From the NCBI GenBank assembly GCA_977020255.1, contig CDROCS010000666.1, positions 62,001-126,000 on the forward strand: a stretch of DNA of 64,000 nt. Direction: 5' to 3'. This DNA comes from Obrimoposthia wandeli (taxonomy: Eukaryota). Of the stretch, positions 16,669 to 56,977 are shown in pieces (within the stretch, counting starts at the first letter, position 1; each line of letters starts with the position of its first letter). The position numbers and the translations under genes are program-made. The notes under the pieces are model-generated. The model was not told the DNA's origin. It did no database searches and worked only from the letters and a program-made list of their open reading frames with translations.

Positions 16669-16681
16669 AAGATCCCTCTTC

Positions 16682-17770: not shown

Positions 17771-17970
17771 TCCCTTTGCTCCCACACGAATAAACAGGCT
17801 AAAATATGGTCTCAATTCGGATTAACATGCAAATAGATAGCATAAGTAATCTCTGAGTGTCTTTATATTTAGATTAAAGCAGACCTAGCTTGAAATCAGA
17901 ATCGAATTGTCGGCATACTAGCCATGATAAAATCGCATACCTTAAGTATCAGTAGCGACAGGGAATAAGT

Positions 17971-18837: not shown

Positions 18838-19243
18838 ATTTATTGGTGCTTATCCCGATATTGAAGTACGCACAGAACAATTATATGGCATCGATAAAAA
18901 ACGCATAAGCTGCTCTGGTGGCAGCGCTGCTATTGATTTAGCCGTTGAGCTGTTAACACGCCATTGTGGTCGTACGCGTGCTATGAAGGGATTAGCCGAT
19001 ATGATTATCGATAAGCCTCGTGGCCAATTGCATCGCTTGTTTAAAGATTACTTCTCGAAATCAGCACATGAATACTGGCACGAAATGAGACTGCAGCATC
19101 TACATTGGCAATTAGTGAATTCTAACCATAGTTTGACTATTTTAGCGGAAGAAATAGGCATTCAAGATGCTAGCTACCTCAGTAAGGTATTTCGTAAGCG
19201 CTTCGGGCAAAGCCCTGCAACATTACGTCACTCGAATAAATAG
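18821..19243 (+). pseudogene. GlxA/FtrA-type AraC regulator remnant (5'-truncated, internal deletion)
   Basis: DJ-1-like tail (SCSGGSAAIDL) fused directly to the second half of an AraC HTH (QLHRLF..SYLSKVFRKRFGQSP); no proper start. Confidence 0.75.
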
Positions 19244-19250
19244 ACCGTAC

Positions 19251-19680
19251 TTAATCTTTCGAAATAAGCCAACCAATCACAATACAACCCAACATCCAGC
19301 TAGAGCCAAATAAAAAAGCATGATTTACATTGTCAGGAATTAGCAGGCAGGCAAGAATTCCAATGATCATAACAATAGCAAATATTATCTGCCAAAAAAT
19401 GTCATATCTATAAGTACCAACGGCTTTAGCTTTCGAATTGTTTTTCATTTGTGAAACATCACAATTTTGCCATATGATAATTAGAGCATAAACGCCCATC
19501 GCCAGCAATTACAAAAAAGTAACATAATGTAAGATTGTGATTCACCAATAAATACAAAATAATCAATACTCTATATGAATAATAAAACACCCTATTCAGT
19601 TGATGTTAATATTATATGTAAGAACAAATCAACCGGAAGCACAAAGCTTTAACATTTTATTCACGTAATCATCTGCACTT
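19251..19680 (-). pseudogene. Degraded membrane transporter (possible amino-acid permease C-terminus)
   Basis: Hydrophobic TM-like segments in 19251-19508; upstream reading broken by stops and frameshifts. Confidence 0.3.
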
Positions 19681-19996
19681 CCTTGCATCTTATTTGTTAT
19701 TGGTATTGAGAAAAATACTTTATTACCTATTTACTATTTTATTACTGATGATAATCACTGTATCATCTCCGGCTCGCTAAGGATTGCACTCGCTTATGAA
19801 AGCATTTTCAGGAAAAGAGCATAATCGATTTTCAACGGCATATTCTCAAATATCGAACCTATTAAAAAACTCTCACAGAGTAAATATATGCGGGTAGTCG
19901 TATTACATCCAGTTAAATAAGTAACTGTTAAATAAGCAGTTACTTCATTGTTATCAAGCGTATGCATTCAAAGACATGGCTTGAAAGTAAGGTAGC

Positions 19997-20551
19997 ATGA
20001 ATATTAAATTTACACATATTTTAACCACACTGGTTGTCGTTTTTTCTACAGCACCTCAAGCTTCAACCATTAAGTTTGGTAACTGGCTTTATTCCGACAC
20101 ATACAAGACATTTATTTCGCAAGAAGTGACTCATGAACTGCCTAAGCAAGCTGAGATCTATCAAATCGCGAAATCTAAAGAGCTTAATGTTGGCTTTATC
20201 GTTCAAAGCCAAGCATGTCATGGAAAAGTCGGTGAATACGATTCAGCTGGCGCATATTTAATCAATAAGAAACGTATAAATTTGGCGTATCAATGTATAA
20301 GTAACAACACTGTACGTTTATTCCCGGTTATTAAGCGTGAACGACAATTTGTGATTAATGAATTCAAAACACAATCGCTCGTTTGTATCAGCCCGACAAA
20401 AGAATTGAAAAACGATCCTAACAGTATTTCATTATGTGTTTCTGGCGCGGGATTTAGTGATGCCTATCATGCACTTTCAATCGGTGAAGATTACACAGCA
20501 AAACAACAATTATCATCGACGACCCGCAAGAGCAAGCATACCGTGCAGTAA
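19997..20551 (+). CDS. Secreted hypothetical protein
   Basis: Signal peptide (MNIKFTHILTTLVVVFSTAPQA); four Cys. Confidence 0.65.
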   Translation: MNIKFTHILTTLVVVFSTAPQASTIKFGNWLYSDTYKTFISQEVTHELPKQAEIYQIAKSKELNVGFIVQSQACHGKVGEYDSAGAYLINKKRINLAYQCISNNTVRLFPVIKRERQFVINEFKTQSLVCISPTKELKNDPNSISLCVSGAGFSDAYHALSIGEDYTAKQQLSSTTRKSKHTVQ

Positions 20552-20803
20552 CAAGAGTCTTCAGCTACTCATTAAATGGGGAATGTAAACATACCTTTAT
20601 ATTCCCTACCTTATGAAAGCAAAATATTACTTATTAATTTCAATTTATGGCTCACTGTAATAATGTTATTGCTATAAAATTTTAGTTGTACTGATTGTGA
20701 TAACAATCACAGGAACACACCGCAATATCGTTACTATAAGGCACATCATTTATTGACACTTTTGTTTTAATAATTAGTCTGTAAAAAGCTAGGTAACGAT
20801 TAC

Positions 20804-21772
20804 ATGACAAAAAAAATCATCTTAGATACCGATCCTGGAATTGATGATGCAATGGCAATCTTATTTGCCGAAGCACACCCAGCATTAGATTTAGTAGCAA
20901 TTACAACAGTTTATGGCAATGCCACTATCGAAAATGCCACCCGTAATGCGCTTTATTTAAAACAGAAATTCAATTTCACCGCAGATATTGCCAAAGGGGC
21001 AAGTAAGCCGCTTCATCGCCCACCTGTTGGCGCGACCGTTGTTGTACACGGTGAAAGTGGATTTGGCGATCTCACTGCACCTGATGACATTACAGAACAA
21101 GCAGACCCTCGCCCTGCTTACCAATACATCATCGACACGGTAAAAGCTAACCCGGGCGAAATTACATTAGTCACTGTGGGCCCATTAACCAATATTGCTT
21201 TAGCCCTTGAAGCTGCACCTGAAATCGTCGACTTAGTTAAAGAAGTTGTCGTGATGGGTGGTGCATTTGGAATGAATGATCACCGTGGTAATGTGACTCC
21301 GTATGCTGAAGCCAATATTCATGATGATCCCCATGCGGCAGATATCGTTTTTTGTGCCTCATGGCCCGTCGTTATTATTGGTTTAGATGTAACTGAACAA
21401 AGCTTTTTCACTGGCCAATATCTCGATGAATTACGCGATGATGCAGGCGAAGTAGGTCAATTTATCTGGGATGTAAGCCGCTATTATTTACGCTTCTACT
21501 CACAAAAAGTCGGACTAAATGGTTGCCATGTGCACGATCCTTCTGCCATCGCGTATGTCATCAACCCCGACTTATTTACCTTACGTGAAGGTGGTGTACG
21601 AGTTGTAACAGATGGCCCAGCAGAAGGCATGACGATTCAAAAATTTGATGAACGTAAATATATGACAGATGAATGGTCATCAATGCCTAGTCAAAATGTG
21701 GGCATTGCCGTCGACGATCAAGCGCTTTTAAAGCTGTATCGTGAAAGCCTAGTTGCATACAGTCAGCAGTAA
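20804..21772 (+). CDS. Nucleoside hydrolase (IUNH family)
   Basis: DTDPGIDDAMA, GPLTN, AEANI and HDP. Confidence 0.95.
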   Translation: MTKKIILDTDPGIDDAMAILFAEAHPALDLVAITTVYGNATIENATRNALYLKQKFNFTADIAKGASKPLHRPPVGATVVVHGESGFGDLTAPDDITEQADPRPAYQYIIDTVKANPGEITLVTVGPLTNIALALEAAPEIVDLVKEVVVMGGAFGMNDHRGNVTPYAEANIHDDPHAADIVFCASWPVVIIGLDVTEQSFFTGQYLDELRDDAGEVGQFIWDVSRYYLRFYSQKVGLNGCHVHDPSAIAYVINPDLFTLREGGVRVVTDGPAEGMTIQKFDERKYMTDEWSSMPSQNVGIAVDDQALLKLYRESLVAYSQQ

Positions 21773-21810
21773 AGCGTTATAAACAAGCTAGATAGGCAAA
21801 GCTAATAACT

Positions 21811-21845
21811 AAGGCTGATCATCAAATAGGTGATCAGCCTTTTCT
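21811..21845. terminator. Rho-independent terminator
   Basis: AAGGCTGATCA-n9-TGATCAGCCTT followed by a T run, between convergent genes. Confidence 0.75.
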
Positions 21846-22725
21846 AGTCTTCAAGTAAACCAGTTAGAGCATCGGCTAGCCACGTTAAAGCAGGACCCTT
21901 GGCTTTTTTCTTCGACATCACACGATCAATAGGAACGCGCCAAGGTTTATGATCGAAGCTTAAATTCAACCGAGCCATCTTCCCATCTGCAACTCCCTCA
22001 TCAGACATATGGCTAGGAATATACCCCCAACCGATACCATTTTTAACTAACTGATTCACCCCATTAAATGTATTTCCCCACCACAAATGCGCCGAAATCA
22101 TAGGAAAGTGAGACAATTCTTGCCCCTCAATGCCTTTAATCAACAACTGACGGTAAGGGATTAAATCAGCCGCTTTTACAGTTTCTAATAAAGCTAAAGG
22201 GTGCGAAGGGCTAACAACACCATGAAAAGGCAAGCTACCCACGTAACAAAGATCAACATCTTGAGGGAAACCGCTATTTGCGAACATTAACCCTATATCT
22301 GCCCTGCCCGAATGCACCAATGCATACACGTCAGGCGTAGAAACGGTATAAAAATCTAAGATAGTGGCAGGAAATAATACCGAAAAATCAGACAATATTT
22401 GCCATAACGCAGGCAATAATAATGCATCATCTACCGCTAATTTTAACTGGGTTTCATTGTTATTGTTCAACGCATTTGCCGCGTTTTCTAATTCACTCGT
22501 TTGCTGCAAAATAGCCTGTGCGAATGATAATAAACGTTGCCCTTCAAGCGTGAGTGACGGCTTGCGAGTACTGCGATCAAATAGTTGCGTATCTAAATCA
22601 ATTTCTAGGGTTGCGATGCCTTGGCTAACTGCTGATTGCACCTTCCCAAGCTTACGCGCACAGGCAGAAAATGAACCCAACTGTGCTGTAACCACAAACA
22701 TTCTTAGCTGTTCTAAATTGTACAT
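21844..22725 (-). CDS. LysR-family regulator
   Basis: GSFSACARKLGKVQSAVSQ HTH; divergent from the PACE gene. Confidence 0.95.
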   Translation of the reverse strand: MYNLEQLRMFVVTAQLGSFSACARKLGKVQSAVSQGIATLEIDLDTQLFDRSTRKPSLTLEGQRLLSFAQAILQQTSELENAANALNNNNETQLKLAVDDALLLPALWQILSDFSVLFPATILDFYTVSTPDVYALVHSGRADIGLMFANSGFPQDVDLCYVGSLPFHGVVSPSHPLALLETVKAADLIPYRQLLIKGIEGQELSHFPMISAHLWWGNTFNGVNQLVKNGIGWGYIPSHMSDEGVADGKMARLNLSFDHKPWRVPIDRVMSKKKAKGPALTWLADALTGLLED

Positions 22726-22818
22726 ATCACTTTTCCTGATAATAACTAACTATCAATCATCTCATTTATTGATGATTATATACCACATGATTTACCCATA
22801 ATGTTTAGAAGGTTTCAA

Positions 22819-37501: not shown

Positions 37502-37528
37502 GATACTGCTTTGATACCAAAATGATAC
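37502..37528 (+). promoter_or_regulatory. Three GATAC pentamers at 11-bp period
   Basis: GATAC at 37502, 37513 and 37524, about 65 bp upstream of the DUF917 gene. Confidence 0.55.
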
Positions 37529-37593
37529 TGAACTAATCTCGACAACAACATACTGTTTCTGTTTCTGTTTCAACAATTGAAAGGATTCAAAAT

Positions 37594-38790
37594 ATGGTAT
37601 TAGAAAAAAAGACACTCAATCACGAAGATTTAAGCGATATTCTTTTAGGCGCTCACTTTTATGCATGCGGTGGTGGTGGCGCGCTAGAAAATGGTAAGGA
37701 GCTACTTAAAGAAATTGATAAGCACTTCAATTCAAAGTCTGAGGTTCAAATTCAATATGTGGAACTGGCTGAAGTCAAAGATACGGACCAGTTACCAGTA
37801 ATGGCTGCAATGGGGGCCCCGCAAAAATTTCTGGAAAAAGGTTATAGTCAATCCCCAATTAGTGCGTTTAATGCCCTTGAGAAACTCAGCAAAACCCAAT
37901 TCGCAACTTTATCACCCGTTGAAACTGGTCCGATAGCCTATGGTATGAGCTTATTAGTTGCTGCAGTAAAAGGTATTCCGATTGTTAATGGCGATGGTGG
38001 TGGAAGAGCTTTCCCATGTTTACAGTTATCTACCTTTGCGAATATAAACTTAGAGAGCCCGATAGCAGTTGCCCCCAGTGTACTCACGTCAGAAAAATCA
38101 ATGCAAGAAGACGGTGCCATTATTACTATTGACTGCGGTTCCAGTGCTGATGTTGACGCGATGACCAGAGGTATTATCAGTACCTCGAAGTGCTTTGATG
38201 ATCGTGCTTCTCTTGCCTCTTTCAACATGACTGGTAAGCAACTAAAACAGCCGAATGCGTTTGTGCCAGATATGCTAATTAAATCGAAAAATCTGGGGGG
38301 TCATATTAGGGAATGTATTTCAGACAACCTTTCTTGTTTTAGTGCCATAGAGCAATTAGACGGGGCTAATTGTGTTATGCAAGGCCGGTTAAGTAATATC
38401 CTTACTTTAACAGTCAATGGTTTTGACTGGGTCACACAAGAATACACCTCAAATTGCTCTAGTGAAAAATTCTATGTTGTTTCACAAAATGAGAATATGA
38501 TTTTATGGTCTGATGATATGGATACACCTATAGCGTTGGCACCTGATCTAATTTGCTGTATTTCTAGTGATGCATCTTTAATGAGCAATGACGAAATTAT
38601 CGAAGCCTGGAATAAAAACAAATCAGACACTCGCTTACAAGAAATGGCCATATTCACTTTACCTGCTGCCTCGCAAATTAACCAACCTTGGTTTCATGAC
38701 AACTTCTCCCAAATATTTAAGCAGTTTGGATATTTTGGTAGTTATCACCCACCAATAACGAAAAATACAGGAGGTTGCAATGCAGAGTAA
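37594..38790 (+). CDS. DUF917-family protein
   Basis: LGAHFYACGGGG, MGAP, PVETG and NGDGGGRAFPCLQ. Confidence 0.88.
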   Translation: MVLEKKTLNHEDLSDILLGAHFYACGGGGALENGKELLKEIDKHFNSKSEVQIQYVELAEVKDTDQLPVMAAMGAPQKFLEKGYSQSPISAFNALEKLSKTQFATLSPVETGPIAYGMSLLVAAVKGIPIVNGDGGGRAFPCLQLSTFANINLESPIAVAPSVLTSEKSMQEDGAIITIDCGSSADVDAMTRGIISTSKCFDDRASLASFNMTGKQLKQPNAFVPDMLIKSKNLGGHIRECISDNLSCFSAIEQLDGANCVMQGRLSNILTLTVNGFDWVTQEYTSNCSSEKFYVVSQNENMILWSDDMDTPIALAPDLICCISSDASLMSNDEIIEAWNKNKSDTRLQEMAIFTLPAASQINQPWFHDNFSQIFKQFGYFGSYHPPITKNTGGCNAE

Positions 38791-39517
38791 AATGAAGCTT
38801 AAAATTATCATTCCTGTTAATACCACTGAGTTTACCGCTCAGATCTCAAAAAGCGTTGATAAATTCAGAAGTGAAAGCGTGAGTATTGATCTTGAGCACA
38901 TTGATAATGGGACCCCTTTTATTCAATCTCGCATAGATCTCGCCATTAACGCGCCTTACGTTATCGAGAAAATAGTTAAAGCAGAACAAGATGGTTTTGA
39001 CGGAATATTTGTCACTGATATGGATATGTGCGGTGTTGAAGCGGCTCGGCAAGCGGTTAGAATTCCGGTGATTGGCGGGTTTAGACCTAGCCTTTACACC
39101 GCAATGTTATTAAGTCAAAAGGTTTCGATACTAACAGTGAATGATGTGGTGGATTTACAAAACGAGCATATCCGCGCATTTGGTGTGACAGAAAACCTCG
39201 CATCGATTCTACCTCTGAATAAGAGTGTTGATGAGTTAAAGAATCCAACACCTGAAGGCGAAAGCAAAATACTTACCGAGTTGTTTGAATTGGCATGCAA
39301 AGCTGTTGAACAAGATGGCGCAGGCAGCATCATGTTCGGCTGCACAGGATTCACGGATTTTGCCGCACCGTTAAACGAATTGCTAAGTGCTAAATTCAAA
39401 CAGAACGTTCCGGTGATGGACCCTAATTGTTGTGCAATTGGCTATTTGATTATGTTGGTGCAAAATAGACTTTCACAAAGTGGATTAAGTTATCCGTATA
39501 AGGGAGTTAGGCAATAG
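38780..39517 (+). CDS. Asp/Glu/hydantoin (allantoin) racemase-family protein
   Basis: IIPVNT, GVEAARQAVRIPVIG, FGCTGF and VPVMDP; overlaps the DUF917 stop. Confidence 0.85.
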   Translation: MQSKMKLKIIIPVNTTEFTAQISKSVDKFRSESVSIDLEHIDNGTPFIQSRIDLAINAPYVIEKIVKAEQDGFDGIFVTDMDMCGVEAARQAVRIPVIGGFRPSLYTAMLLSQKVSILTVNDVVDLQNEHIRAFGVTENLASILPLNKSVDELKNPTPEGESKILTELFELACKAVEQDGAGSIMFGCTGFTDFAAPLNELLSAKFKQNVPVMDPNCCAIGYLIMLVQNRLSQSGLSYPYKGVRQ

Positions 39518-39592
39518 ACCACGATATAGACGTATGAGATTTGGATAGAGGTGTAAATAAATGAAAGGCAGCCCAAAAAAGGCTGCTTTCAT

Positions 39593-40103: not shown

Positions 40104-41111
40104 TTATGCCCAGCACATGGTTATCATGGCTGCAATATTCATGGGTCGAGTTTCGCCGCCACCAGTGTCAGTTGTTTTGATTTTCGCCATTGGGTTAATT
40201 ACTGGAGTACTAATTCCTGTCGGTTGTAAGGGTACATTTTGAGAGCCAAATTCTAATTGATGATTATGGCTGTGAATTTCATCCGATTCAGTAGATCCGA
40301 CACCATCGTATAATCCTTCTCTCCCTAGTAACTCTCGTTTATCGTTTCCAGTGTCTCTGTTCGATCCATTATCCCAGCTGCGAATAAAATACCCACGCAT
40401 ATCAGGGAGCAGAGAATTTTTTCCATTTTCGTCTGTTCCAAACCTCCCATTCAGTACTGAATTCAGCCTAGTCTGATTTTCATCTAATGCTATTGCTGGT
40501 TCGCAAACAGAAAGGTGTGTTGGAGGTGGAGTCTCCGTGTTTATCCAAAATTGCTGCTCCCCAATGATCCCTTTAACCATCAAAGGTAGATAATCTATGG
40601 CCTGCGCCCCTTTATTACAGTAAATTGAATATAGTATGATTTTTGCTTCCGGTACTTTACATTGCAGCTTAAACCTTAAAAAACTGGTATTTTCTCCAAT
40701 CTGAAGGTTTAATGAAAAGTTTATTAACTGGTTTTGTGCCGAAGGAATAGTCTTTGAGTTTTCAGCTTCTCCATCAGTAAGGGTCACAGTCACTTGAGCA
40801 CCTTCACTAATCATTATTGAGCCAGCAAGGGTAACCATTTCCCCTTGTAGATATTTATTAGCACGTGGAAATTCATTTAAATTCTGTGAAAGTGACAGGT
40901 ACGGAGCAGTATTCGACACAGTTAATTCACAACCGCCATCTGAATTTATTACCACTGGCATATTGTTACCTGATTTACGGTTTTCATACACCCATCCATC
41001 AGGATGGCCACAATCTCCTGAAACTTTATTACTAAAGAGCGAAAAATCACCGTTATAAACGAGATTGGTAAGAGCCTGTCTATTGTACTGTTGACAAAAA
41101 TGTTCATCCAT
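40104..41111 (-). CDS. CBM-like jelly-roll domain plus phage tail-collar domain protein
   Basis: N-terminal LTNLVYNGDF..DGW; C-terminal LPDMRGYFIRSWDNG..GS.E.DEIHSHNH..TGGGETRPMNIA. Confidence 0.8.
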   Translation of the reverse strand: MDEHFCQQYNRQALTNLVYNGDFSLFSNKVSGDCGHPDGWVYENRKSGNNMPVVINSDGGCELTVSNTAPYLSLSQNLNEFPRANKYLQGEMVTLAGSIMISEGAQVTVTLTDGEAENSKTIPSAQNQLINFSLNLQIGENTSFLRFKLQCKVPEAKIILYSIYCNKGAQAIDYLPLMVKGIIGEQQFWINTETPPPTHLSVCEPAIALDENQTRLNSVLNGRFGTDENGKNSLLPDMRGYFIRSWDNGSNRDTGNDKRELLGREGLYDGVGSTESDEIHSHNHQLEFGSQNVPLQPTGISTPVINPMAKIKTTDTGGGETRPMNIAAMITMCWA

Positions 41112-41370
41112 TGAGATATTCTCTTGTTATTATCTATACTTCTCTAATTTTTGGATTAACGTACATCCTGTATCTGTTGTTATCTGCTGGTCATATTCTT
41201 AGCAGAATTTGTCCTTGATAATGGGATATAAGCAAAAGCCAATGTAATACCATTATTGAATACATTCGCTTTTATGATGTTAGTGCTGTTCTCATTGCGT
41301 GGTAGTAACATACTGATTGCCAGGCTTTAACCCCTGGCTTTGGTTAATGTTCTTTTTTATGTAATGTGTA

Positions 41371-42063
41371 TTACGCCATTTCGACCAACTCTGTTTTAAA
41401 ACTTTCTACGAATGGGCTCGTACCGAATTTCAGATCTATCCAGTTGTTGTTTTCATCCAATGTCACACGTGCATGTGGTTTTGAACTAGGGAATACAATT
41501 TTTTGTTTTCCTGTTGTTTGATTTGCAGATATAACTTCATTGCCCTTTACTGAAGCGCTACCTGCTGTGACGTAGTATGATATGTCAGGTTCCATTGCTA
41601 GAACCGCATTATTTTCCGCCGTATGAACAAATGCCATTTTCTTGTTCATTGCTAGTGAGAACGCAAATGTGTCTGATGGAATAATGGGATCAGCATCTAA
41701 TGTTTCTATAAAAAAGGAACCAGCTTCGTCTTTACTATCAGTAGGGTCTGAAAATCCTGCAGCCCCATTGCTATCTAAATAAAACTTACACTTATTTGGC
41801 TTGCCAGAAATGCTAACATCTTTTTGTCCGCCGACGCTTAATACAGTCCCAGCTTTCAACGTTTCTGTTTCTGACCATTGTAACTGGAACGCTGTTTCCC
41901 AATTGAATCCTGCGTGCTGCGTGTCCCTTACCGGGCGAAGATTAGTTAACCATGCTGTTTGAGAGAAGCCGTTTTTCAGTAAGTTAGGATCGTCCTGGAA
42001 CATGAAGATGTTTTGTGTTTTTCCACTGTTATTTTGTACGTATAGAGTAAATTTATCTGACAT
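41371..42063 (-). CDS. RhiA-like beta-rich protein
   Basis: FTLYVQNNS..AW..FNWETAFQLQWSET..SYYVTAG..VF..ARVTLDENNNW resembles the RhiA family as recalled; no signal peptide. Confidence 0.6.
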   Translation of the reverse strand: MSDKFTLYVQNNSGKTQNIFMFQDDPNLLKNGFSQTAWLTNLRPVRDTQHAGFNWETAFQLQWSETETLKAGTVLSVGGQKDVSISGKPNKCKFYLDSNGAAGFSDPTDSKDEAGSFFIETLDADPIIPSDTFAFSLAMNKKMAFVHTAENNAVLAMEPDISYYVTAGSASVKGNEVISANQTTGKQKIVFPSSKPHARVTLDENNNWIDLKFGTSPFVESFKTELVEMA

Positions 42064-42303: not shown

Positions 42304-42507
42304 CTAACTAAACGTTGCACTATTCCCATTAACCCCTGTGCATGCTCGACCTACTTTGGCAAACCCTGCGACCTGAATTAAATAATCGTCATTTACTACA
42401 AGCACACCAGGATTATTTATATTATTAACGTTCCTTGCATCCTCATAATCAGTTGTTCCTGTTGCTATATCAGCAGTTCCAGCTTCGTTTAGTATTAGTA
42501 CGTTCAT
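42304..42507 (-). CDS. Small hypothetical protein (67 aa)
   Basis: AGGGA RBS; follows the conserved hairpin leader; first gene of the leftward unit. Confidence 0.55.
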   Translation of the reverse strand: MNVLILNEAGTADIATGTTDYEDARNVNNINNPGVLVVNDDYLIQVAGFAKVGRACTGVNGNSATFS

Positions 42508-42745
42508 GATATTATTCCCTATATCGATTTATGTTTATATTTATATTTATAGTCATAGGCTCTTTTATATTGCCTATAACATGTATTTAAAGTCCACGCG
42601 GTGGATTTTATTTTTACTATATCTTTAACGACAGTGATTAAATAGCAACGAATATTGCTGTTATTGAACCACTCCACTTTTTTACTGATCTTTTAGCACC
42701 AAAATTAGCGGTTAAAAATACTTACATTTCAGATAACACTAATTG

Positions 42746-43288
42746 CGTTAAACTTTATTAAAATAGTATTAAGGTGTTCTTAAAATATATTTATTCGCAC
42801 TTTTTAATCGCCTTTCAATATTCAGCTCATCGAAGTCACAATATAAATATACGAGCTAAATATAATTCCTTCCGTATCAAAACAGCATCATGTGCTCATA
42901 AGTCAGTATCTCTTGGTATCACAATATCAATATTTTCTAATTACTTTAATTGGTTACGATAAATGTCAAACTTGCTAAATTCAGGTTTGCATATACTCTA
43001 AGGTTACGGCTATATATAAAACTAGGAATAACATATGGCAGGTAAAGTGCTAATCAATGGAATGAAGCTGAAGCAACTTGGTATTAGGGAGCAACACGCA
43101 CTCTCTTGAGTAGAAGTTAGCTAACTTCTTCGCCGTGCCTATCGAGGAACTTATTACTGCAGACTCGGTAAAAGTCGCTGATATGCCGGCGTCCACTATG
43201 GAAAAGCAGAAAACCTTGTTCTGTGGTTACGATCTGCGTCGAAATACATACTTATTGAAGTTGCAAGACAAACGGCAAAACTCGAACC
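42746..43288 (+). repeat. Diverged copy A of the regulator module (paralog of 46555-47188)
   Basis: Long collinear matches, e.g. CGTTAAACTTTATTAAAATA, CTTGCTAAATTCAGGTTTGCATATACTCTAA and AAACGGCAAAACTCGAACC. Confidence 0.95.
42874..42920 (-). promoter_or_regulatory. Phased GATAC array (site A)
   Basis: Minus strand GATAC-n5-GATAC-n16-GATGC-n6-GATAC. Confidence 0.7.
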
Positions 43289-43380
43289 ATTTTCAGGTTC
43301 CTCGGGTCACCGTTCCCTTTGTTTCGTTAACCCTAGCTAAGGCATCTGATGGTGTAAATCATCTGCGTCACTTAGGTTAA
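43035..43380 (+). pseudogene. Decayed paralog of the XRE-STAND regulator
   Basis: ATGGCAGGTAAAGTGCTAATCAATGGAATGAAGCTGAAGCAACTT matches the 46839 start; small insertion, deletions through the HTH, and loss of NTPase/TPR. Confidence 0.92.
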
Positions 43381-43407
43381 TGAAATATTGTGCAAAATCG
43401 TTAAAAT

Positions 43408-43454
43408 GATACGAAAAGATACATCGACAAAGCTGGATGATACGCAAGTGATAC
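43408..43454 (+). promoter_or_regulatory. Phased GATAC array (site C)
   Basis: GATAC at 43408, 43418, 43439 and 43450; same 10/21/11 spacing in a non-homologous context. Confidence 0.7.
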
Positions 43455-43730
43455 TGCAATAATTAGCACGTTTGCTAAATTTAATTTGTGGCTTCGGCTT
43501 GTTGACAATAATTATGGGATCAGACCAATTACAATAAATTTAATATGATTATTATATTGTAATCGATAAGTATATTTTTATTTAGCTAGTGCTAACAAAA
43601 TAAACACCACAATGATAACGTTCAACTAATGCTGGAGTCATACAATAAATGCAACAGATTAAAAATTGATAAGTGAGTCAGTTGAAGGAAGAATTTTACT
43701 CTCACTCATAAACTCAAAAACCACGATATC

Positions 43731-43907
43731 AATGGTCTGATCAGGCGTTTCTGGCCTAAGAAATTCGACATGGCGACTCTTACAGAGAAGGCTATTGAGG
43801 ATAGGATTTTCATGCTGAACCTCACTCCTAGAAAAGTATTGGGAGGGCTAACACCCTTTGAACCCTTTACTGACAAGTTTGCCTATTTCGGAGTACTAAC
43901 TCTTTAA
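43731..43907 (+). mobile_element. IS30-family transposase C-terminal remnant
   Basis: NGLIRRFWPKKFDMATLTEKAIEDRIFMLNLTPRKVLGGLTPFE. Confidence 0.85.
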
Positions 43908-43921
43908 CAGCTAAATAGGAT

Positions 43922-43978
43922 GTTAAAAGACCATTGTCTTTTAACTCCATGTTATAGGCAATGGAAAGAGCCTATAAC
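43922..43978 (+). promoter_or_regulatory. Tandem hairpin leader upstream of ORF 44007
   Basis: GTTAAAAGAC-CATT-GTCTTTTAAC followed by GTTATAGGC-n10-GCCTATAAC; the second hairpin recurs at 42552-42580 on the minus strand. Confidence 0.6.
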
Positions 43979-44006
43979 GTCGATTATAAATTAAAAGGAT
44001 AAAATA

Positions 44007-44315
44007 ATGAAGAACACAGAAAGTTTGCCAGGAACGGGGATAAATCCTGGAGATGTTACAATCGTCAATAATGGTTCACCCTGTGAGGTTAAACTATTAA
44101 GTGATGATGGACTGCATGCCGATTACGGTTGGTATGGAGAGCAAGCAGGAAGATATGTTACAAAAAATGGGTTAGAAAATATGAACGGCAAAGCCATATG
44201 GGTTGAGGTAAATGGACAAATATTGTGTAAAAATCTAACTCCTTACAATACGGATTGGGCACCAATTGTCTTTGAAATAAATCCAGACTCTAACGACTGC
44301 CATCTAGCTCAGTAG
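44007..44315 (+). CDS. Small hypothetical protein (102 aa, no signal peptide)
   Basis: AAGGA RBS; beta-rich; three Cys. Confidence 0.7.
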   Translation: MKNTESLPGTGINPGDVTIVNNGSPCEVKLLSDDGLHADYGWYGEQAGRYVTKNGLENMNGKAIWVEVNGQILCKNLTPYNTDWAPIVFEINPDSNDCHLAQ

Positions 44316-44563
44316 GAAAAATCTCTTTTCATTTGATAATTCCATCTCTCAACGATTTGGTAATAATGGCGACCATAGTAAATTTTTAATAAGCAATACT
44401 AAGATCAATAAGTTAAAAACATTTTACAATAAAACTTGGTCGCTCAAACTATGCCCATCTGAGTATAGAATAATCTGGGTGTAGTTTTTAACCACACCCA
44501 GATATGAATAGTAATCACCTCTAAAAACACATTTCTCTTTAAACCTTTATTGAAGGACACATT

Positions 44564-45583
44564 ATGAAAATAGCATTGAAAATAGTCATTATCGTCGATG
44601 ATACCTATGACAGCATTGCGACAAATATTAATGCCTCGGTTGGTATTAGCTATCAAGATATCGAATCGACCAATCCGGGTGTGCCACCTCAAAGCATTAG
44701 CCCGGAACAGGTCATATTAATTCCCACACACGATAACGAGATAATAGGCCCATGGAAATACACTATATTTGCAGGCGATTCATTTTCATCTATAGCCGAC
44801 GGTATTAACCAATGCAAAGGCGTGACGGCTCAAGGCATTGAACAGGCTAACGATACACCAGCCAGCGAGTTGCAAGTAGGGCAATCTATTGATATTCCTA
44901 CAGAGGACGAAATAACTCCACTTCCACCAGTAGTTACCGCCGAGAATATGGGTTATTGGGATAAAACCTATTCACCCGGCGATCCACTGTTAGGTGCAAC
45001 CATTGGGATTGCATTTAGTGGTTGGGCCGATGTAAACCAAGCCATTGAGGATAGTAAAAAAGTCTACGATAATTTAGTTGGTGAGAAATATATCTCAATC
45101 GGTGGTGGTGCAAAAGATACAGGTAGTTTTACTAAAACCGTGATCGATCAAATTAATACTGCCATCCGAAATAACCAGTTCAAAGGTTATACAGGGTTGG
45201 CCTATGATGTTGAAGAGGGTGATTCGGGATTGGCCTCTGACTTTAGTGAATCATTTGCCCTCGCCCGGAAGAATAATTTAAAAGTACTGGTTACAATTAG
45301 TCATTCTGCACCTTATGGCATTCTTGACAGGGTGGCGCTGATGGAGAGTTTTTTAGAGGATGAAAACATCGACTTTTTGTCACCTCAGCTTTACAGTGGT
45401 GGTGACGAAAAGGAAAATGACTATCATACCCTCTCAGATTTTCCATGGACTAAGTATAGAAAATGCCAAGCTGCTATTTTAGTCTCAATTGTCACCGCCG
45501 ATATGTATGAAGACGCTCAGAGCTACTTTGAGAAGCTCGATATCGAGCTTAAAGGTTATATTCAATGGGCAAATGTAAGTTAA
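44564..45583 (+). CDS. Tandem LysM plus GH18-like TIM-barrel protein
   Basis: DDTYDSIA..NP..QVILIP and YTIFAGDSFSSIA..VGQSIDIP (two LysM); ISIGGG and GLAYDVEEG. Confidence 0.8.
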   Translation: MKIALKIVIIVDDTYDSIATNINASVGISYQDIESTNPGVPPQSISPEQVILIPTHDNEIIGPWKYTIFAGDSFSSIADGINQCKGVTAQGIEQANDTPASELQVGQSIDIPTEDEITPLPPVVTAENMGYWDKTYSPGDPLLGATIGIAFSGWADVNQAIEDSKKVYDNLVGEKYISIGGGAKDTGSFTKTVIDQINTAIRNNQFKGYTGLAYDVEEGDSGLASDFSESFALARKNNLKVLVTISHSAPYGILDRVALMESFLEDENIDFLSPQLYSGGDEKENDYHTLSDFPWTKYRKCQAAILVSIVTADMYEDAQSYFEKLDIELKGYIQWANVS

Positions 45584-45586
45584 TGG

Positions 45587-45785
45587 GGTGATCTGCAAAC
45601 AGAGCAGTATCAACCCTCACCCGTCAGTCGTGTTGAGATAGATAAACCCGATGGCGGTAAACGCCAACTGGGTATCCCAACCGTCATTGATCGGGTGATC
45701 CAACAAGCCATCGCTCAGGTACTAACGCCCATCTTTGACCCCGATTTCTCGAACAACAGTTACGGGTTTCGTCCGAGTCGAAACG
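45587..45785 (+). mobile_element. Group II intron reverse transcriptase fragment (~66 codons)
   Basis: YQPSPVSRVEIDKPDGGKRQLGIPTVIDRVIQQAIAQVLTPIFDPDFSNNSYGFRP; no YADD or maturase domain. Confidence 0.9.
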
Positions 45786-45828
45786 GGCTAATGCCCGTTT
45801 TAATGGTATTTAGGTTTTGTTATAAGAT

Positions 45829-46512
45829 TTATTGGATTATATATTTAAATACGAACCCCGCGGTAAAAGTTCGCGTAGTGTTGCCCAGATTAAGAACTAC
45901 ATTATACATTGTGTTTTCTTTTAGAGTTCCTGCAGAGAAATTAACGGGCACCAGTCCAGATGATGCGCCAGGGGTAGACATTTGCTTCGCTTTCCGATCA
46001 CCTTGTCCCAAAACAGTACCTTCACGAAGAATAAGCCACGTAATATCAGAACTGGCAATTGCGTTCGATGGTCTATTAAAAAAGGTGTTAATTCCAGTTA
46101 GGTTTTTAGAAATTACCGTCAATGAACTCATGCCTTGTTGAACAGGCTGCCCCGCCATAATTGATTGCGTAGCTGCTACAGTATTTAAATTTCTATCAGC
46201 AGTTACAGCAATTGTATATGCCCCCTTTAAAAAATTCAAATCGCCTGGATTAACCGACACAGAGCCTTCATTACTGTTTATATTGGCTCTGTAAACTGGT
46301 GTTTTCGTTTCATTCACTATAATCCCTTCCCAGATAACAACTTGTCCGCCAACATTGTCATCAGGCATTTTATAGTTAAATGTTAGCTCAGTGGCTGATT
46401 TAATCTAGAGGTTGGTAATTTCCGAAAGATAGCCAACATCATTATGGGAACCTTTATAATTTTCCAATGATGGCAATACTAAAACTTCGTCTAGTGTGTT
46501 TACGTTACTCAT
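45829..46512 (-). CDS. RhiB-like two-domain beta-sandwich protein with an in-frame TAG at codon 36
   Basis: ATG at 46512 with AAGGA RBS is in frame with ORF 45829-46368; TAG at 46407-46405; LTFNYKMP..VVIW..YTI..SSLT..FNRPS..W resembles RhiB as recalled. Confidence 0.55.
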
Positions 46513-46554
46513 AATATTATCCTTTTATTTATAGGTTTTTAATAAAAATAATTT

Positions 46555-47188
46555 CGTTAAACTTTATTAAAATAATTTCAAGGTGACCTGAAATATATTA
46601 ATTAGCACCTTTTAATCGCTTTTCGGTATTCAGCTAATCGAAGTGACAACATTAAGATACAAGGTGAATATAATTTCATTCGTATCAAAACAGCATCATG
46701 TATTTGCTCGTCGGTATCTATTGGTATCACAATGTCAATATTTTCTAATTATTTTAATCTGTTACGGATAAATCAAGCTTGCTAAATTCAGGTTTGCATA
46801 TACTCTAAAGTTACCATTATATGAAACTAGGTGAGCACATGGCAGGTACCGTCCTGATCAATGGAATGAAACTGAAGCAACTTAGGGAGCAACACGCTTT
46901 ATCTCAAGAAGGGCTTGAATATGCGTGCAGCCAAAAAAAAGGGTGTAGTGTTTCAATTGCGACCATCAAAAGAGCTGAGCTGGGCACCCCCTTGAGTAGA
47001 AGAACTGTAGCGAGGTTAGCTAACTTCTTTACCGTGCCTATCGAGGAAATTATCACTTCCGACTCGGTAAAAGTTTCTGAAATACCGGCGCTCACTACGG
47101 AAAAAACAGAAAGTCTTGTTCTGTGGTTACGAACAGCTTCAAAAGACATGCTTATCGATATTGAAAAACAAACGGCAAAACTCGAACC
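46555..47188 (+). repeat. Copy B of the regulator module
   Basis: Paralogous to 42746-43288. Confidence 0.95.
46682..46728 (-). promoter_or_regulatory. Phased GATAC array (site B)
   Basis: Minus strand GATAC-n5-GATAC-n16-GATGC-n6-GATAC. Confidence 0.7.
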
Positions 47189-49724
47189 TTTATTTACCCA
47201 GTGTCTTGGCAACACGTTGATGATAGCCCTCCCATGCATTCTTAAAGAAAAGAAACTCTATTTAGCATTACAAAACATTCTATTAGAGTTATCTCTTTAT
47301 TCAAGTAGTCGGTTTAGTGCATTGATCACCGTTCAGGCTCTGACTAAGTCGTCCAATAATCAATGGATATTAGATGATCATCGCATAAATGCGCTTTCTG
47401 AGTTAGCAATACAAGTACAGAGCACATCAATCGTTGTTTCTGATGTGTTATGCGAAGCAAGTATGCGTTATTTTTTATATCAGAATAATGAGTCGATTTC
47501 AGGTTTTAAGACGTTAGTTCAGCAGTGTGAACCTTTATCAAATTACACTATTGGTAGAGATCATGAAATCCAGCTATTTCGCTATGCCATTAATAGCGTT
47601 GAGCAGGAGCAAAAGAGCTACTTTTTGACGATTAATGCCGTTGAAGGTATGGGCAAGAGTCACATGTTGGATGTATTGGCTGATATGGCCAAAAAACAAG
47701 GCTGGCTAACGATTAGATTAGATTTTGAGTTGTCACCTACGCCTTCAGAAATTCTGATTAATCAATTATATGACGCTTTAAATACTAACGATGATATAAC
47801 GAAAGAATATAAACAAATTCAAGTTGCCGACTACCCACTAATACTATCAGAAAACATTATAAGTATGGACCGGGAATCAGGCCCTATCTTTTTATCATTA
47901 GATAACTTCCACTTGATAGACCAAGCTACTTTAAAATATCTCAGTAATATGATGGAACGCATACTAAATAAGGCCATTTTATTTGCTGTAAGTTACTTAC
48001 CGTCCAATGAAACAAATCGTTATACTGAAGAGCTTCGTTATTTGAGATTACCAGAAATAAATATGGCTTTGGCTCCATTAACGGCTAAGGATATGGAGAC
48101 ATTTTCTCGGGAAGGGCCGATAATACCTGACGATACTAAGCTCTCTTACATGGAAATATCTGAAGGAAACCCATATTATTATCAACAGCTATCTAATTAT
48201 GGGCATGAAAATAGAATTCCCTCTACGATTAAATTTCACCTTCAGAATAAAATTGATTGTCTGTCACCTTTATCAAGACAAGTTCTTGCTCTTATTTCAC
48301 TGACTTCTAATAACCTAACGCTAGATTCTATCAATTCGATAATTTCTCTCGCGAGTTCGACAATTGAAGAGTTGGTAGGCATGAGATTGCTTAGAGTTTC
48401 TAATGATAAAATAATCACAATATGCCAGCCATTTTTGCGAAATGTAATACTAGGCAATATTCGACACCAAGATAAATGCAACATCTATCTGTCTCTCGCG
48501 AAGCAGGTTAAAGATAGTGCTTCATTATCCGATCTCAACGTGCAATTGAAGTTAGCTGACTATTACAGCCAAGGAGAAGCGTGGTGTAAGGCGGCACTGT
48601 CTTTTTTAAATTGTGGTCAGTATTATACGGAGAAAGGAGAGTATCGTCAGGCTCAATGTTACCTGAAGTTGTCATTAGAACATCATCAAAAAATCCCCCT
48701 ATTATCACAATCAAACGAATTATTGTTAGATATTCGCCTAAATCTGGCAACCATTGTTCGTGTTACACATGGCTGGGTTAGTCATAGTACAGTGGCAGCT
48801 TATCAGAATTGTATTTCGCTAGCGAAACATCAGCGATGTGCAAAGCGCCATTGTATTTCATTGAGTGGTTTGTGGGTGACTCAGCTAATGGCCATGGAAT
48901 TTGAATTATCTGAGGTAACAGCAAATGAAATTCTGTCGTTAGCTGAGAAATCCAATGAATCTAGTTGTAAAGCTCTAGCCCACAGCTGCTTAACAAATTC
49001 TCAATTTTGGCTTGCGAAGCACCACCAAGCAATAAACAATGCGAAGCTTACATTTAAGTACTTCCAAGAGGATAAGGACACAGCGACCTATGCAACAATT
49101 GGTCTAAATCCATTAATGTTGGCAGGTTGTTTCGGTAGCTTATCGGCTTCACTACTTTGTCAAGATCAGGAGGTGAGCTACTTTCAAAGCCACAATCAAG
49201 ATAAAGTTATAATAAATGAACCATTTAGTTACGCTATCGCGTTGCAAGGAGAAGTCTGGGTAAGTTATCACTTGCGAGATTTTGAACAAGTAGTCGGATT
49301 GTCAGAGCAATTACTATCCCTTGCTGAATCATATAATTTCCCTTTTTATAAAGGGGTAGCCATGCTTTTTAAAGGCTGGGCACAGCTTTTCACATCGAAT
49401 CAAGATGCAGAAAAATCGTTGATAGTTATAGAGGAAGGTTACAATCACTGGTTAGCATCAAGTGGCGATCAAATCGCACACTCCCTTTACTCGCTTATCA
49501 AAGCTGAGTTATATATAAAAGTATCACGACAGGACGAAGCAATACGTCTTTTAGAAAATGGGATAGAAATTGCGTTGAAAAAAAAGGAAGCGTGTTACTT
49601 AGTTCCTATGTATGCCATGTTAGCCTCTTTAAAAAATAAGGATGATCATTACAGGGAATTAGCAAAAACCACCGCTAATGACCAAGATACCACTTTGTTT
49701 TTACAAGAATACAGTCTTAATTAA
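46839..49724 (+). CDS. XRE-HTH / degenerate cyclase-like / STAND AAA NTPase / TPR protein
   Basis: LKQLREQHALSQEGL..SIATIKRAELG (XRE); IGRDHEI, EGMGKS Walker A, LSLDNFH Walker B, EGNPYY; helical TPR-like C-terminus; start set by conservation with the paralog. Confidence 0.88.
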   Translation: MAGTVLINGMKLKQLREQHALSQEGLEYACSQKKGCSVSIATIKRAELGTPLSRRTVARLANFFTVPIEEIITSDSVKVSEIPALTTEKTESLVLWLRTASKDMLIDIEKQTAKLEPLFTQCLGNTLMIALPCILKEKKLYLALQNILLELSLYSSSRFSALITVQALTKSSNNQWILDDHRINALSELAIQVQSTSIVVSDVLCEASMRYFLYQNNESISGFKTLVQQCEPLSNYTIGRDHEIQLFRYAINSVEQEQKSYFLTINAVEGMGKSHMLDVLADMAKKQGWLTIRLDFELSPTPSEILINQLYDALNTNDDITKEYKQIQVADYPLILSENIISMDRESGPIFLSLDNFHLIDQATLKYLSNMMERILNKAILFAVSYLPSNETNRYTEELRYLRLPEINMALAPLTAKDMETFSREGPIIPDDTKLSYMEISEGNPYYYQQLSNYGHENRIPSTIKFHLQNKIDCLSPLSRQVLALISLTSNNLTLDSINSIISLASSTIEELVGMRLLRVSNDKIITICQPFLRNVILGNIRHQDKCNIYLSLAKQVKDSASLSDLNVQLKLADYYSQGEAWCKAALSFLNCGQYYTEKGEYRQAQCYLKLSLEHHQKIPLLSQSNELLLDIRLNLATIVRVTHGWVSHSTVAAYQNCISLAKHQRCAKRHCISLSGLWVTQLMAMEFELSEVTANEILSLAEKSNESSCKALAHSCLTNSQFWLAKHHQAINNAKLTFKYFQEDKDTATYATIGLNPLMLAGCFGSLSASLLCQDQEVSYFQSHNQDKVIINEPFSYAIALQGEVWVSYHLRDFEQVVGLSEQLLSLAESYNFPFYKGVAMLFKGWAQLFTSNQDAEKSLIVIEEGYNHWLASSGDQIAHSLYSLIKAELYIKVSRQDEAIRLLENGIEIALKKKEACYLVPMYAMLASLKNKDDHYRELAKTTANDQDTTLFLQEYSLN

Positions 49725-55099: not shown

Positions 55100-56977
55100 T
55101 TACTCATTCGTAATATGCGCTGCCAAATACGCTTTGGCTTGTTCACGCCCCATGTATTTGCCCAAGGTTTTTTCGGGTACTTGCGCCAAGTTCACCACAA
55201 TCAAACCATCTAATGCATCGTTAAATGCAGGGTCGACGTTAAAGCACACCAACTTACCTTTCAACCCAAGATACTGACGCAGTAATACTGGCAAACCACG
55301 ACCATGTTCTAAGCGACTCAACACTTTTGATAATAACTGCACATCACCTAACGCAGACAGCATATCGGTATGCCAGAAGGCCTGCCCGTCACCTTTCAAT
55401 GGCGTGGTAGCATTTACTAATGCCGCTTTGGCGTTGTCATAATGATGAACCGTTAATGTCGATGCCATTAGCTGACGCGCCACTAAACTGTAGTCATTAC
55501 TGATGCTGACAGGGCCAAACAAATGGGTATATTGCGGGTGACGCGAAACAAACGTCGCAATGCCTTTCCATAGCAACAATAACGCACTTAAACTGCGTTG
55601 ATACGGTGCGGCAACCACAGAACGACCTAATTCTATTGATTTACCTAACTGGTTAATAAACGCTTCATCGTAATTAAACAAACTACGTGAATATAACCCG
55701 TCTATGCCTTGTTTCTCGACCAACTCATCCACCAACCCCATACGATAAGCACCCACTAATTCGTGACGGGTGTTATGCCATACAATAAGCTGGTGATAAT
55801 GCGGATCATAACCATCTACATCGCATGCTAACCCCGTGCCTTCACCCACCGCACGAAAACTAATTTCACGTACGCGTCCAATTTCTTGCATCATCATTGG
55901 AATTACGGCAGAACGCACGCAGTACACATCGAAATCCCCTTGGGTTAACAAGTGGCAGTTCGGCTCAAGCAGATCCATTTCTGCTTGCAATAAAGCGGGG
56001 GCAATCGCCGTAATCACGGGTTCAGTATCAGTATCAGTATCAGTATCAGACATTAACTTACTTGCTATCGATTCATAAGCAGCTGACTCATAAACGCCTG
56101 ATTTATTGACCAATGATTGAGTATTGTTATTACCTTGCAGCGGATTCGTCGCACTCAATAAATAGGTATTAAGTCGCAGGTAATTCACCACTTTCTGATC
56201 GCTATCTAACGCTTTCAATTCAGAAAACGGAATCGCATCACCAATGGCAATCGACATGGTTTGATTGTGCTTATTCAGCAACTCACGCCCCAGCAACAAA
56301 GTACGCAGCATCGGGTGAATGGTGCCTGCTTTGTAAAAGGCTTTACTATTGTGACCATCAATAAAGATTGGCACCGTGGTCGCTTGGCTACGTTTAACCA
56401 ATTTAGCCACAGAGCGGCTCCATGCTTTGTCGATCAAGCGGTGTGGCATAGCCTGCGTTTCTTCGGCAGAATCTGACGCGGATTGATAGGTCGACACTTC
56501 GCCTGCCGGAAAAATCAGTAGTAATCCCCCTTCTGCCAAATGCTGATAGGCTTCTCGCATGGCTTTTATATTGGCTTTAATCGCCTCTTTGCCTTCAAAC
56601 ACATCGACGGCGATAAACAACTCGCTGATTTCAGGTAAACGCTTTAAATAATGATTCGCCAACACTTTAATGTCATTACGTACATGCCCTAATAATTCAG
56701 CCAACATTACGCCTTCTATCGCGCCCAGCGGGTGATTCGCCACCACAACCGTTGCGCCATTTAGCGGAACATGATCTAAACTGCCTTTAGTAACTTGATA
56801 CTCAATACCCAACACATCGAGGGTATAACGCATGAATGCATGGGCACTTAGCCCTGCTGGTCGTTGTTGATATAGTGCATCAAGTTGGCTTAGCCCTGTT
56901 GCCCATTCAGCGACAGATTCCCCTAAACCAAAGGGCGTAACGCGCGGTAAACGAAACGGGCTACTTTGCGCATTCAT
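55100..56977 (-). CDS. OlsF-like bifunctional amino-lipid synthase (PlsC-type O-acyltransferase plus OlsB/GNAT N-acyltransferase)
   Basis: VVANHPLGAIEG, FPAGEV; EIGRVREISFR..D.YD..Y, IELGRS and LLRQYL. Confidence 0.85.
   Translation of the reverse strand: MNAQSSPFRLPRVTPFGLGESVAEWATGLSQLDALYQQRPAGLSAHAFMRYTLDVLGIEYQVTKGSLDHVPLNGATVVVANHPLGAIEGVMLAELLGHVRNDIKVLANHYLKRLPEISELFIAVDVFEGKEAIKANIKAMREAYQHLAEGGLLLIFPAGEVSTYQSASDSAEETQAMPHRLIDKAWSRSVAKLVKRSQATTVPIFIDGHNSKAFYKAGTIHPMLRTLLLGRELLNKHNQTMSIAIGDAIPFSELKALDSDQKVVNYLRLNTYLLSATNPLQGNNNTQSLVNKSGVYESAAYESIASKLMSDTDTDTDTEPVITAIAPALLQAEMDLLEPNCHLLTQGDFDVYCVRSAVIPMMMQEIGRVREISFRAVGEGTGLACDVDGYDPHYHQLIVWHNTRHELVGAYRMGLVDELVEKQGIDGLYSRSLFNYDEAFINQLGKSIELGRSVVAAPYQRSLSALLLLWKGIATFVSRHPQYTHLFGPVSISNDYSLVARQLMASTLTVHHYDNAKAALVNATTPLKGDGQAFWHTDMLSALGDVQLLSKVLSRLEHGRGLPVLLRQYLGLKGKLVCFNVDPAFNDALDGLIVVNLAQVPEKTLGKYMGREQAKAYLAAHITNE
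56022..56049. repeat. In-frame hexamer microsatellite (TCAGTA)4
   Basis: Encodes SDTDTDTDTE in the interdomain linker of the OlsF-like protein. Confidence 0.9.

Follow-up and report, generated by a model that had tools for sequence, protein, structure and literature searches.

Four arrays in which the pentamer GATAC is directly repeated in steps of helical turns lie in a 64,000-nucleotide stretch of contig CDROCS010000666.1 (NCBI GenBank assembly GCA_977020255.1, Obrimoposthia wandeli; positions 62,001 to 126,000 of the forward strand), which as a whole is called the window below and within which all unassigned coordinates are counted. On the evidence of sequence comparison, these arrays are genuine promoter elements conserved in evolution. 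The reading that we favor, at a probability of about 0.65, is that they serve as upstream activator sites of sigma-70-type promoters lacking a usable -35 hexamer, and that they are most likely bound by the XRE-type helix-turn-helix (HTH) domain of the protein encoded beside array B, an oligomer of which would recruit RNA polymerase. It is from the comparisons described below that we infer who binds the arrays, that the protein activates rather than represses, that it oligomerizes, and that it responds to a ligand. The arrays, a further weak pair, and the gene of the candidate regulator are as follows.

37502..37528, plus strand: array D, three GATAC boxes with 11/11 spacing, 5' of the DUF917 gene
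42874..42920, minus strand: array A, four boxes with 10/21/11 spacing, box 3 reading GATGC; a duplicate of array B
43408..43454, plus strand: array C, four perfect GATAC boxes with 10/21/11 spacing, in the orientation opposite to that of A and B
46682..46728, minus strand: array B, four boxes with 10/21/11 spacing, divergent from the intact regulator gene
41170..41184, minus strand: weak GATAA-N5-GATAC pair, 5' of a 335-amino acid (aa) tail-fibre/collar-like gene; unsupported as a site
46839..49724, plus strand: candidate operator-binding regulator, 961 aa, with XRE HTH, alpha/beta, STAND ATPase, and tetratricopeptide repeat (TPR) regions (the mechanically called open reading frame (ORF) starts at 46821, and the relatives begin at the ATG at 46839)

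Arrays and promoter geometry in the window

Arrays A to D were first pointed out in a sequence-only reading of the window, and each of them reads exactly as it was described there. Pairs of the form GATAC-N5/6-GATAC number six in the window against 0.20 expected from 100 dinucleotide shuffles, and the full four-box 10/21/11 pattern is observed three times against 0.00 in the shuffles. An equal frequency in shuffled AT-rich intergenic DNA, which had been named beforehand as the outcome contrary to a functional operator, was not seen: when only the local AT-rich intergenic DNA (3,470 nt, 33% GC) was shuffled 5,000 times, the mean was 0.014 pairs and the maximum was 1, as compared with the six observed. 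The signal is the arrangement of GATAC, because the word itself is not enriched in the window, where it occurs 65 times per strand with ~70 expected. Tandem Repeats Finder left arrays A, B, and D uncalled and gave a weak 2-copy row inside array C. Elsewhere in the window, four GTATC words with a 6-bp period (56025-56043) fall within an ORF on the minus strand (55100-56977); they are a tandem hexamer of the coding sequence and have nothing to do with the operator.

Arrays A and B both belong to a stretch of ~380 bp that has been duplicated (42733-43113 and 46542-46911, piecewise 77-90% identical), and the earlier caution that their likeness might reflect duplication alone is therefore justified within the window; it does not extend to the array as such, because five other species have retained this 10/21/11 array with spacers that have diverged. 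The flanks of arrays C and D have no relation to those of A and B, as had been said of array C, which repeats the same spacing. All boxes within an array share one orientation, with no conserved inverted partner, and every array points to a downstream gene, in agreement with the proposal that the boxes occupy one helix face and are directed at target genes.

A predicted -10 hexamer of the form TAnnnT follows each array at a nearly constant distance.

37551..37556, plus strand: predicted -10 hexamer of the DUF917 promoter, 22 nt past the last box
42846..42851, minus strand: predicted -10 hexamer of array A, 22 nt past the last box
43476..43481, plus strand: predicted -10 hexamer of array C, 21 nt past the last box
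46654..46659, minus strand: predicted -10 hexamer of array B, 22 nt past the last box

When the arrays of the related loci introduced in the next section are included, TAnnnT occurs 21-22 nt after the box pair in 23/23 arrays, non-homologous promoters among them (at the DUF917 site of locus L068, the distance was counted from the second exact box); its background frequency is 2-4% per position. The T, A, and T are invariant columns of the alignment of DUF917 promoters, and T-A...T is likewise kept in the alignment of array B orthologues; the ~22 nt between the last box and the hexamer are unrelated in sequence across promoter types. The compact pattern composed of two boxes, 21-22 nt, and TAnnnT retrieves only the four known promoters in the 64 kb, where 0.1 is expected, and in the related loci it retrieves only the expected promoters. 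At the -35 position, 0-3 of 6 bases agree with the sigma-70 hexamer used by the promoter scan (mean 2.25; 3/6 at the DUF917 promoter), and the standard sigma-70 promoter scan called none of the array promoters. Since TAnnnT begins 21-22 nt after the last box, that box falls at about -39 to -35, and the other boxes fall at about -48 and -59 in the 11/11 arrays or at about -48, -69, and -79 in the 10/21/11 arrays. The predicted geometry is that of an activator-dependent class II promoter. The weak pair at 41170-41184, which had been put forward as a fifth site, does exist, but it has no TAnnnT hexamer at 21-22 nt and no orthologue, and it is not supported as a site.

Conservation of the arrays and of the regulator

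The window locus (W) was compared with 12 related loci (L001, L002, and so on), whose regulators are 94% to 27% identical to that of the window. Genes for a DUF917 protein and an Asp/Glu/hydantoin racemase adjoin the regulator gene in 12/12 of them, even at 27% regulator identity, and the XRE-STAND gene is the sole DNA-binding gene common to all loci, which also share no integrase, replication, or transposase gene. An 11/11-spaced array stands 5' of the DUF917 gene in every locus having that region, and orthologues of array D were found in L001, L002, L004, L006, L007, L008, L010, L029, L068, L009, and L070. Two exact boxes are present in L002, L007, and L068, and four boxes, several of them reading GACAC, in L009 and L070. 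The HTH of the L009/L070 clade differs at two positions from that of Vibrionaceae, and the specificities of box and HTH may have covaried there.

Loci W, L001, L006, L007, L008, L010, and L029 have the 10/21/11 array; they are exactly the loci with a gene diverging from the regulator. The array is absent in L002, which has no divergent gene. A remnant of it persists in L004 (V. ostreicida; 9888 and downstream, minus strand), in which box 1 is still intact, whereas box 2 has degenerated and the other boxes are gone; it sits 112 nt from the regulator ATG, with no divergent gene there, which hints either that the proximal boxes serve the regulator's own expression or that the cargo was recently lost. 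From the regulator-proximal box to the regulator ATG, the distance is 110 nt at array B and 110-115 nt in 10 loci, a set that includes L009 and L070, where the divergent target is DUF917 itself.

Between species, the box columns of the 10/21/11 arrays are 97% pairwise identical as compared with 56% for the inter-box columns, and those of the 11/11 arrays are 91% identical as compared with 45%. Conservation extends past the pentamer that was searched for, with T at -1 in 57/64, a pyrimidine at +5 in 56/64, and a purine at +6 in 57/64, so that the consensus is T before GATAC and then pyrimidine-purine-A; the resulting unit of ~9 bp matches the footprint of a single HTH. No box spacings occur other than 10, 11, or 21 bp, apart from 32 bp where an intermediate box is degenerate or missing, and the box is constant across loci of 39-53% GC. 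Most 10/21/11 arrays keep box 3 as GATGC with CACAT directly before it, and CTCGACA is conserved between the last box and the -10 hexamer at the DUF917 promoters of Vibrionaceae.

An exact-match scan of 185,579 species genomes for the four-box pattern gave 20 matches, 18 of which are tandem repeats with a 21-bp period in unrelated phyla; non-tandem four-box sites were found only in P. jeanii and V. kasasachensis, both of which carry the regulator. A three-box scan of metagenome contigs was discarded as a source of further loci, as 37/37 matches were perfect 11-bp tandem microsatellites with none near DUF917 or the regulator. Five soil metagenome contigs (L032, L035, L050, L061, and L062) have a common element with five to six GATAC boxes in 11-bp phase, which is present in inverted copies on one contig (at 74+/423- in L035 and at 473+/805- in L061) and may represent mobile-element ends or the operator of an unrelated system.

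The regulator is composed of an XRE-type HTH (residues ~15-75), an alpha/beta domain (~95-235), a STAND ATPase with the nucleotide-binding oligomerization domain (NOD) fold (~245-560), and a TPR sensor (~560-965). Pfam recovered AAA_16 above the cut-off (8.9e-08) and TPR_12 weakly. The AlphaFold model, with a predicted local distance difference test (pLDDT) score of 83, has a four-helix domain at the N terminus (15-69) and an all-helical repeat region at the C terminus (549-965), for which a profile search of the PDB gave TPR matches. The best Foldseek match was the STAND protein PH0952 (7e-12), the second was Avs3 (3.9e-08), and MalT followed at 2.4e-05, with CED-4 and Apaf-1 also found; the PDB profile search returned PH0952 at 1.2e-07 together with faint matches to BldD, and NCBIfam gave a faint match to AfsR in the TPR region (0.003). 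In an alignment of 17 sequences, G276, G278, and K279 of Walker A are invariant, as is D361 of Walker B, which ends the predicted strand 356-361 and is followed by N, not by a second acidic residue. The alpha/beta domain (about 47100-47540) is modelled at pLDDT 85-93 and has no Pfam family match; a cyclase-like assignment was dropped because Pfam gave it no support. The regulator is a STAND ATPase, a class that comprises the oligomerizing activators MalT and AfsR, and its modelled fold, taken together with the multi-box operators, suggests oligomerization that would depend on ligand and ATP.

Conservation within the protein is highest in the HTH, which holds 22 of the ~99 invariant columns of the 17-member alignment in 7% of the length, and its recognition helix is identical in 17/17 aligned family members. 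An exhaustive profile search of 1.84 billion sequences added ~25 full-length representatives in which this helix is near-identical; homologues are few and come from Vibrionaceae or marine metagenomes. We take the HTH as the probable binder because the constancy of the recognition helix parallels that of the box and because the loci have no second DNA-binding gene in common. The comparison with the 12 other loci, the promoter geometry, and the co-occurrence of an invariant HTH all support the original proposal that an oligomeric activator uses its XRE domain to act on a phased operator. Our literature search turned up neither this regulator family nor a direct-repeat operator built of GATAC.

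Proposed mechanism and alternative explanations

In the mechanism we propose, the TPR/arm region would sense a ligand and thereby bring the STAND protein into an ATP-bound, oligomerizing state, and the HTHs of the oligomer would then line up head to tail along a single DNA face, one to each ~9-bp box. The HTHs would occupy three consecutive turns at the DUF917 promoter, and two turns, a skipped position, and two more turns at the divergent promoters and those of the cargo genes. The promoter-proximal protomer, at about -39 to -35, would contact RNA polymerase as in class II activation.

The closest known systems share parts of this scheme. The operators of AfsR and other large SARPs consist of direct repeats 11 or 22 bp apart, the 3' repeat lying 8 bp from the -10 element, at promoters with poor -35 and -10 elements; each repeat takes up one protomer, and the protomers, set side by side, touch RNA polymerase (PMC10936776). 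These Streptomyces proteins resemble the regulator in having an N-terminal DNA-binding domain, a STAND NOD ATPase, and TPRs, as well as direct repeats arranged by helical turns. They differ in that a SARP carries an OmpR-type winged helix and a BTAD, whereas the regulator has an XRE-type HTH and no Trans_reg_C or BTAD match, and in that the last box of the arrays lies 21-22 nt, not 8 bp, from the -10-like hexamer. The present system is further set apart by an extra alpha/beta domain and by arrays of as many as four boxes, in which one position is skipped; it belongs to Gammaproteobacteria rather than Actinobacteria. Because it lacks the winged helix and BTAD and keeps another distance to the -10 hexamer, the regulator is not a SARP.

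MalT of E. coli binds several asymmetric boxes at promoters without a good -35 hexamer. It shares the NOD fold with the regulator, as does the archaeal STAND-TPR protein PH0952 (both Foldseek matches), but it has a C-terminal LuxR-type HTH and a SUPR sensor in place of the N-terminal XRE HTH and the TPRs, and its own box and box arrangement are unlike the GATAC arrays. MalT is reported to be an inducer- and ATP-dependent oligomerizing activator (PMC4381067). An N-terminal XRE-type HTH is also found in XRE/Cro-cI regulators and in RRNPP proteins such as PlcR and NprR. RRNPP proteins, too, pair the XRE HTH with a TPR sensor. Both groups, however, use palindromic operators and dimers and have no NOD ATPase, whereas here the repeats are direct and a STAND module lies between HTH and TPR; the regulator is not a classical XRE repressor, because its sites are direct and not inverted repeats. 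The antiphage, NLR (NOD-like receptor)-like Avs proteins have the same NOD-plus-TPR sensor fold (hence Avs3 as the second-best structural match), but the N terminus of the regulator is a DNA-binding HTH, not a nuclease or protease, and two metabolic enzymes are encoded beside it. Simple tandem repeats and iterons include the spacer in the repeated unit, whereas the DNA between the boxes of the arrays diverges between species.

Several points weigh against the activator-site reading. The usual target of an XRE-type HTH protein is a palindrome, to which it binds as a dimer, so that head-to-tail use would be unusual, and the HTH of the regulator stays under the Pfam cut-off (HTH_31 at 3.4e-04 and HTH_3 at 7.4e-03). 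The 23 arrays are not independent, as the promoters share ancestry, and represent ~8-10 clearly diverged contexts. The fixed 110-115 nt ties the array to the regulator's own promoter in a way that the simple model does not explain, and the target of array C is uncertain because a leader of ~520 nt precedes the first gene. Finally, the exact-match genome scan is blind to degenerate arrays and to two- or three-box sites elsewhere.

The unexplained distance to the regulator gene would fit autorepression, and the same protein might in fact act on the same boxes mainly as a repressor, or dually, with the ADP-bound form blocking the -35 region and the ligand releasing or remodelling it. Such a scheme, which we rate as unlikely, would accord with the fact that XRE-family proteins are mostly repressors and that the proximal box abuts the -35 position, where bound protein could occlude RNA polymerase. 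The -35 hexamers of the target promoters are, however, very poor (0-3/6, and uncalled by the sigma-70 scan), and these promoters should therefore be weak even without a repressor; moreover, no box covers the -10 or start region, and the farthest boxes lie near -80, an extent like that at activator-dependent promoters. STAND regulators of known function are activators, MalT among them. AfsR, too, activates (PMC10936776).

The XRE-STAND protein might also be a mere neighbor with another DNA target, the boxes being read by an unlinked factor of a kind that typically recognizes direct repeats one helical turn apart, for example an AraC-type protein or an OmpR/PhoB-type response regulator; direct repeats of 10-11 bp, the last of which abuts the -35 position, are indeed the classic layout of winged-helix response regulators. 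We nevertheless regard this as improbable, since the XRE-STAND gene stands alone among DNA-binding genes in being common to all loci, the array keeps its fixed distance to the regulator start in 10 loci, the box and the recognition helix stay the same at protein identities as low as 27% and across 39-53% GC, and the non-tandem four-box pattern appears in the 185,579 species only where the regulator is present. That the arrays have no regulatory role at all, and are mobile-element iterons, products of chance, or repeat debris left by duplication, recombination, or arm-type sites, is very hard to sustain. The duplication of A and B, the hot spot of gene turnover between racemase and regulator, and the microsatellites that make up most matches of exact pattern scans elsewhere would suit it. 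Against it stand the facts that C and D are not duplicates of A/B and that the arrays are not tandem repeats, that the spacers diverge (45-56% identity) while the boxes stay (91-97%), and that a fixed 21-22 nt to a -10-like hexamer and a constant gene-ward orientation are properties of promoters; mobile-element or replication genes are not common to the loci, and the shuffle tests exclude chance.

If the arrays are activator sites of the regulator, they provide a complete and testable cis-regulatory code, comprising box, spacing, promoter position, binding helix, and core regulon, for a family without a published member. They would also suggest that a STAND oligomer can employ XRE-type HTHs head to tail, although this domain normally reads palindromes as a dimer; AfsR in Streptomyces and MalT in E. 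coli reach the same solution with other DNA-binding folds.

Predicted regulon, cargo genes, and neighboring features

The core regulon, a well-supported prediction, would be the operon of DUF917 (hydantoinase-like) and racemase genes, and the lineage-specific orphan genes divergent from the regulator would form an accessory regulon. DUF917 proteins are uncharacterized, probably hydantoinase-like, and often paired with hydantoin racemases (preprint 10.1101/2023.09.25.559410); tying this pair to a dedicated sensor would narrow the search for its substrate, and the arrays would explain how the unannotatable orphan genes beside the regulator may be controlled. The genes and other elements of the window locus are listed below.

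37594..38790, plus strand: DUF917/S-Me-THD-like gene, 398 aa (Pfam PF06032 at 1.3e-26, PF20906 at 6.3e-13)
38780..39517, plus strand: Asp/Glu/hydantoin racemase gene, 245 aa (Pfam PF01177 at 1e-26), in the same operon as DUF917
39565-39589: terminator-like hairpin after the racemase gene, from a terminator scan
40104-41111, minus strand: tail-fibre/collar-like gene, 335 aa, the C-terminal half of which matches tail-fibre PHROGs at 4e-10
41371-42063, minus strand: 230-aa orphan ORF, after the 67-aa ORF
42304..42507, minus strand: 67-aa ORF, the first ORF of at least 60 aa downstream of array A; no family match
42534-42591, minus strand: hairpin leader element downstream of array A, just 5' of the ribosome-binding site
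43037..43380, plus strand: broken remnant of a regulator copy, from alignment with the intact gene and blastx in two frames
43940-43996, plus strand: hairpin leader element downstream of array C, homologous to that of array A as an inverted copy
44007..44315, plus strand: 102-aa orphan ORF, the first gene downstream of array C, with the ~520-nt leader
44564-45583, plus strand: LysM protein gene, after the 102-aa ORF
45829-46368, minus strand: 179-aa orphan ORF downstream of array B; no Pfam, NCBIfam, PHROG, or PADLOC match
46405-46512, minus strand: 35-aa ORF with a good Shine-Dalgarno sequence in the leader of array B; no family match

The predicted accessory targets in the window are thus the 35-aa and 179-aa ORFs for array B, the 67-aa and 230-aa ORFs for array A, and the 102-aa ORF and the LysM protein for array C. 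Divergent orphan genes differ by species, with mutual similarity only between L007 and L010, and in a set of 15 billion sequences the clusters that contain the cargo proteins have 1-2 members. The cargo genes encode hypothetical proteins, for which no function was obtained from Pfam, NCBIfam, or PHROGs. Gene turnover has a hot spot between racemase and regulator; in the 94%-identical relative L001, this interval holds a gene for a GH19 glycosidase (8037-8750, minus strand). None of the tail-fibre-like, LysM, and GH19 genes lies within a recognizable prophage, and a prophage origin was rejected because the tail-fibre PHROG match is confined to the 335-aa gene and no other phage genes were seen. 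A known defense system was likewise rejected, as PADLOC gave no match for the regulator or nine cargo proteins (E <= 0.01). A 45-aa ORF (43770-43907) was considered as the C terminus of a transposase, but the idea was dropped in the absence of a Pfam match and of a plasmid tblastn match.

A more speculative view, to which we give little credence, is that the regulator is an NLR-like sensor with a transcriptional output, which would respond to a specific molecule by expressing the hydantoin/cyclic-amide-type enzyme pair together with a fast-exchanged orphan cassette (tail-fibre/collar-like, LysM, GH19-type). If this were true, the locus would be an undescribed inducible module for antagonism, defense, or small-molecule signalling, not a plain catabolic regulon.

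The regulator remnant belongs to the array A copy of the duplication and corresponds to about the first 12% of the gene (residues ~1-118), the rest being absent; it is interrupted by one or more premature stops, its reading frame changes at least once, and an internal piece is missing within the HTH. The long leaders have no Rfam match at E <= 0.1, that is, no riboswitch or known RNA. The leader elements downstream of arrays A and C fold into a 9-11-bp hairpin (z = -3.7 and -2.9), and the copy in L001 (~9540-9590, minus strand) is weaker (z = 0.1); the element may be a shared 5'-untranslated region cassette of the cargo genes. The start region of the 35-aa ORF resembles that of the 102-aa gene at 44007. 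In L007 (V. spartinae, CP046268), a cluster at 14654-22738, 1.8 kb downstream of the regulator, encodes a second STAND protein (kinase, AAA_16, and TPR; 1383 aa) together with YcaO and TfuA, and it looks like a peptide-modification cluster of the thiazole/oxazole-modified microcin (TOMM) type.

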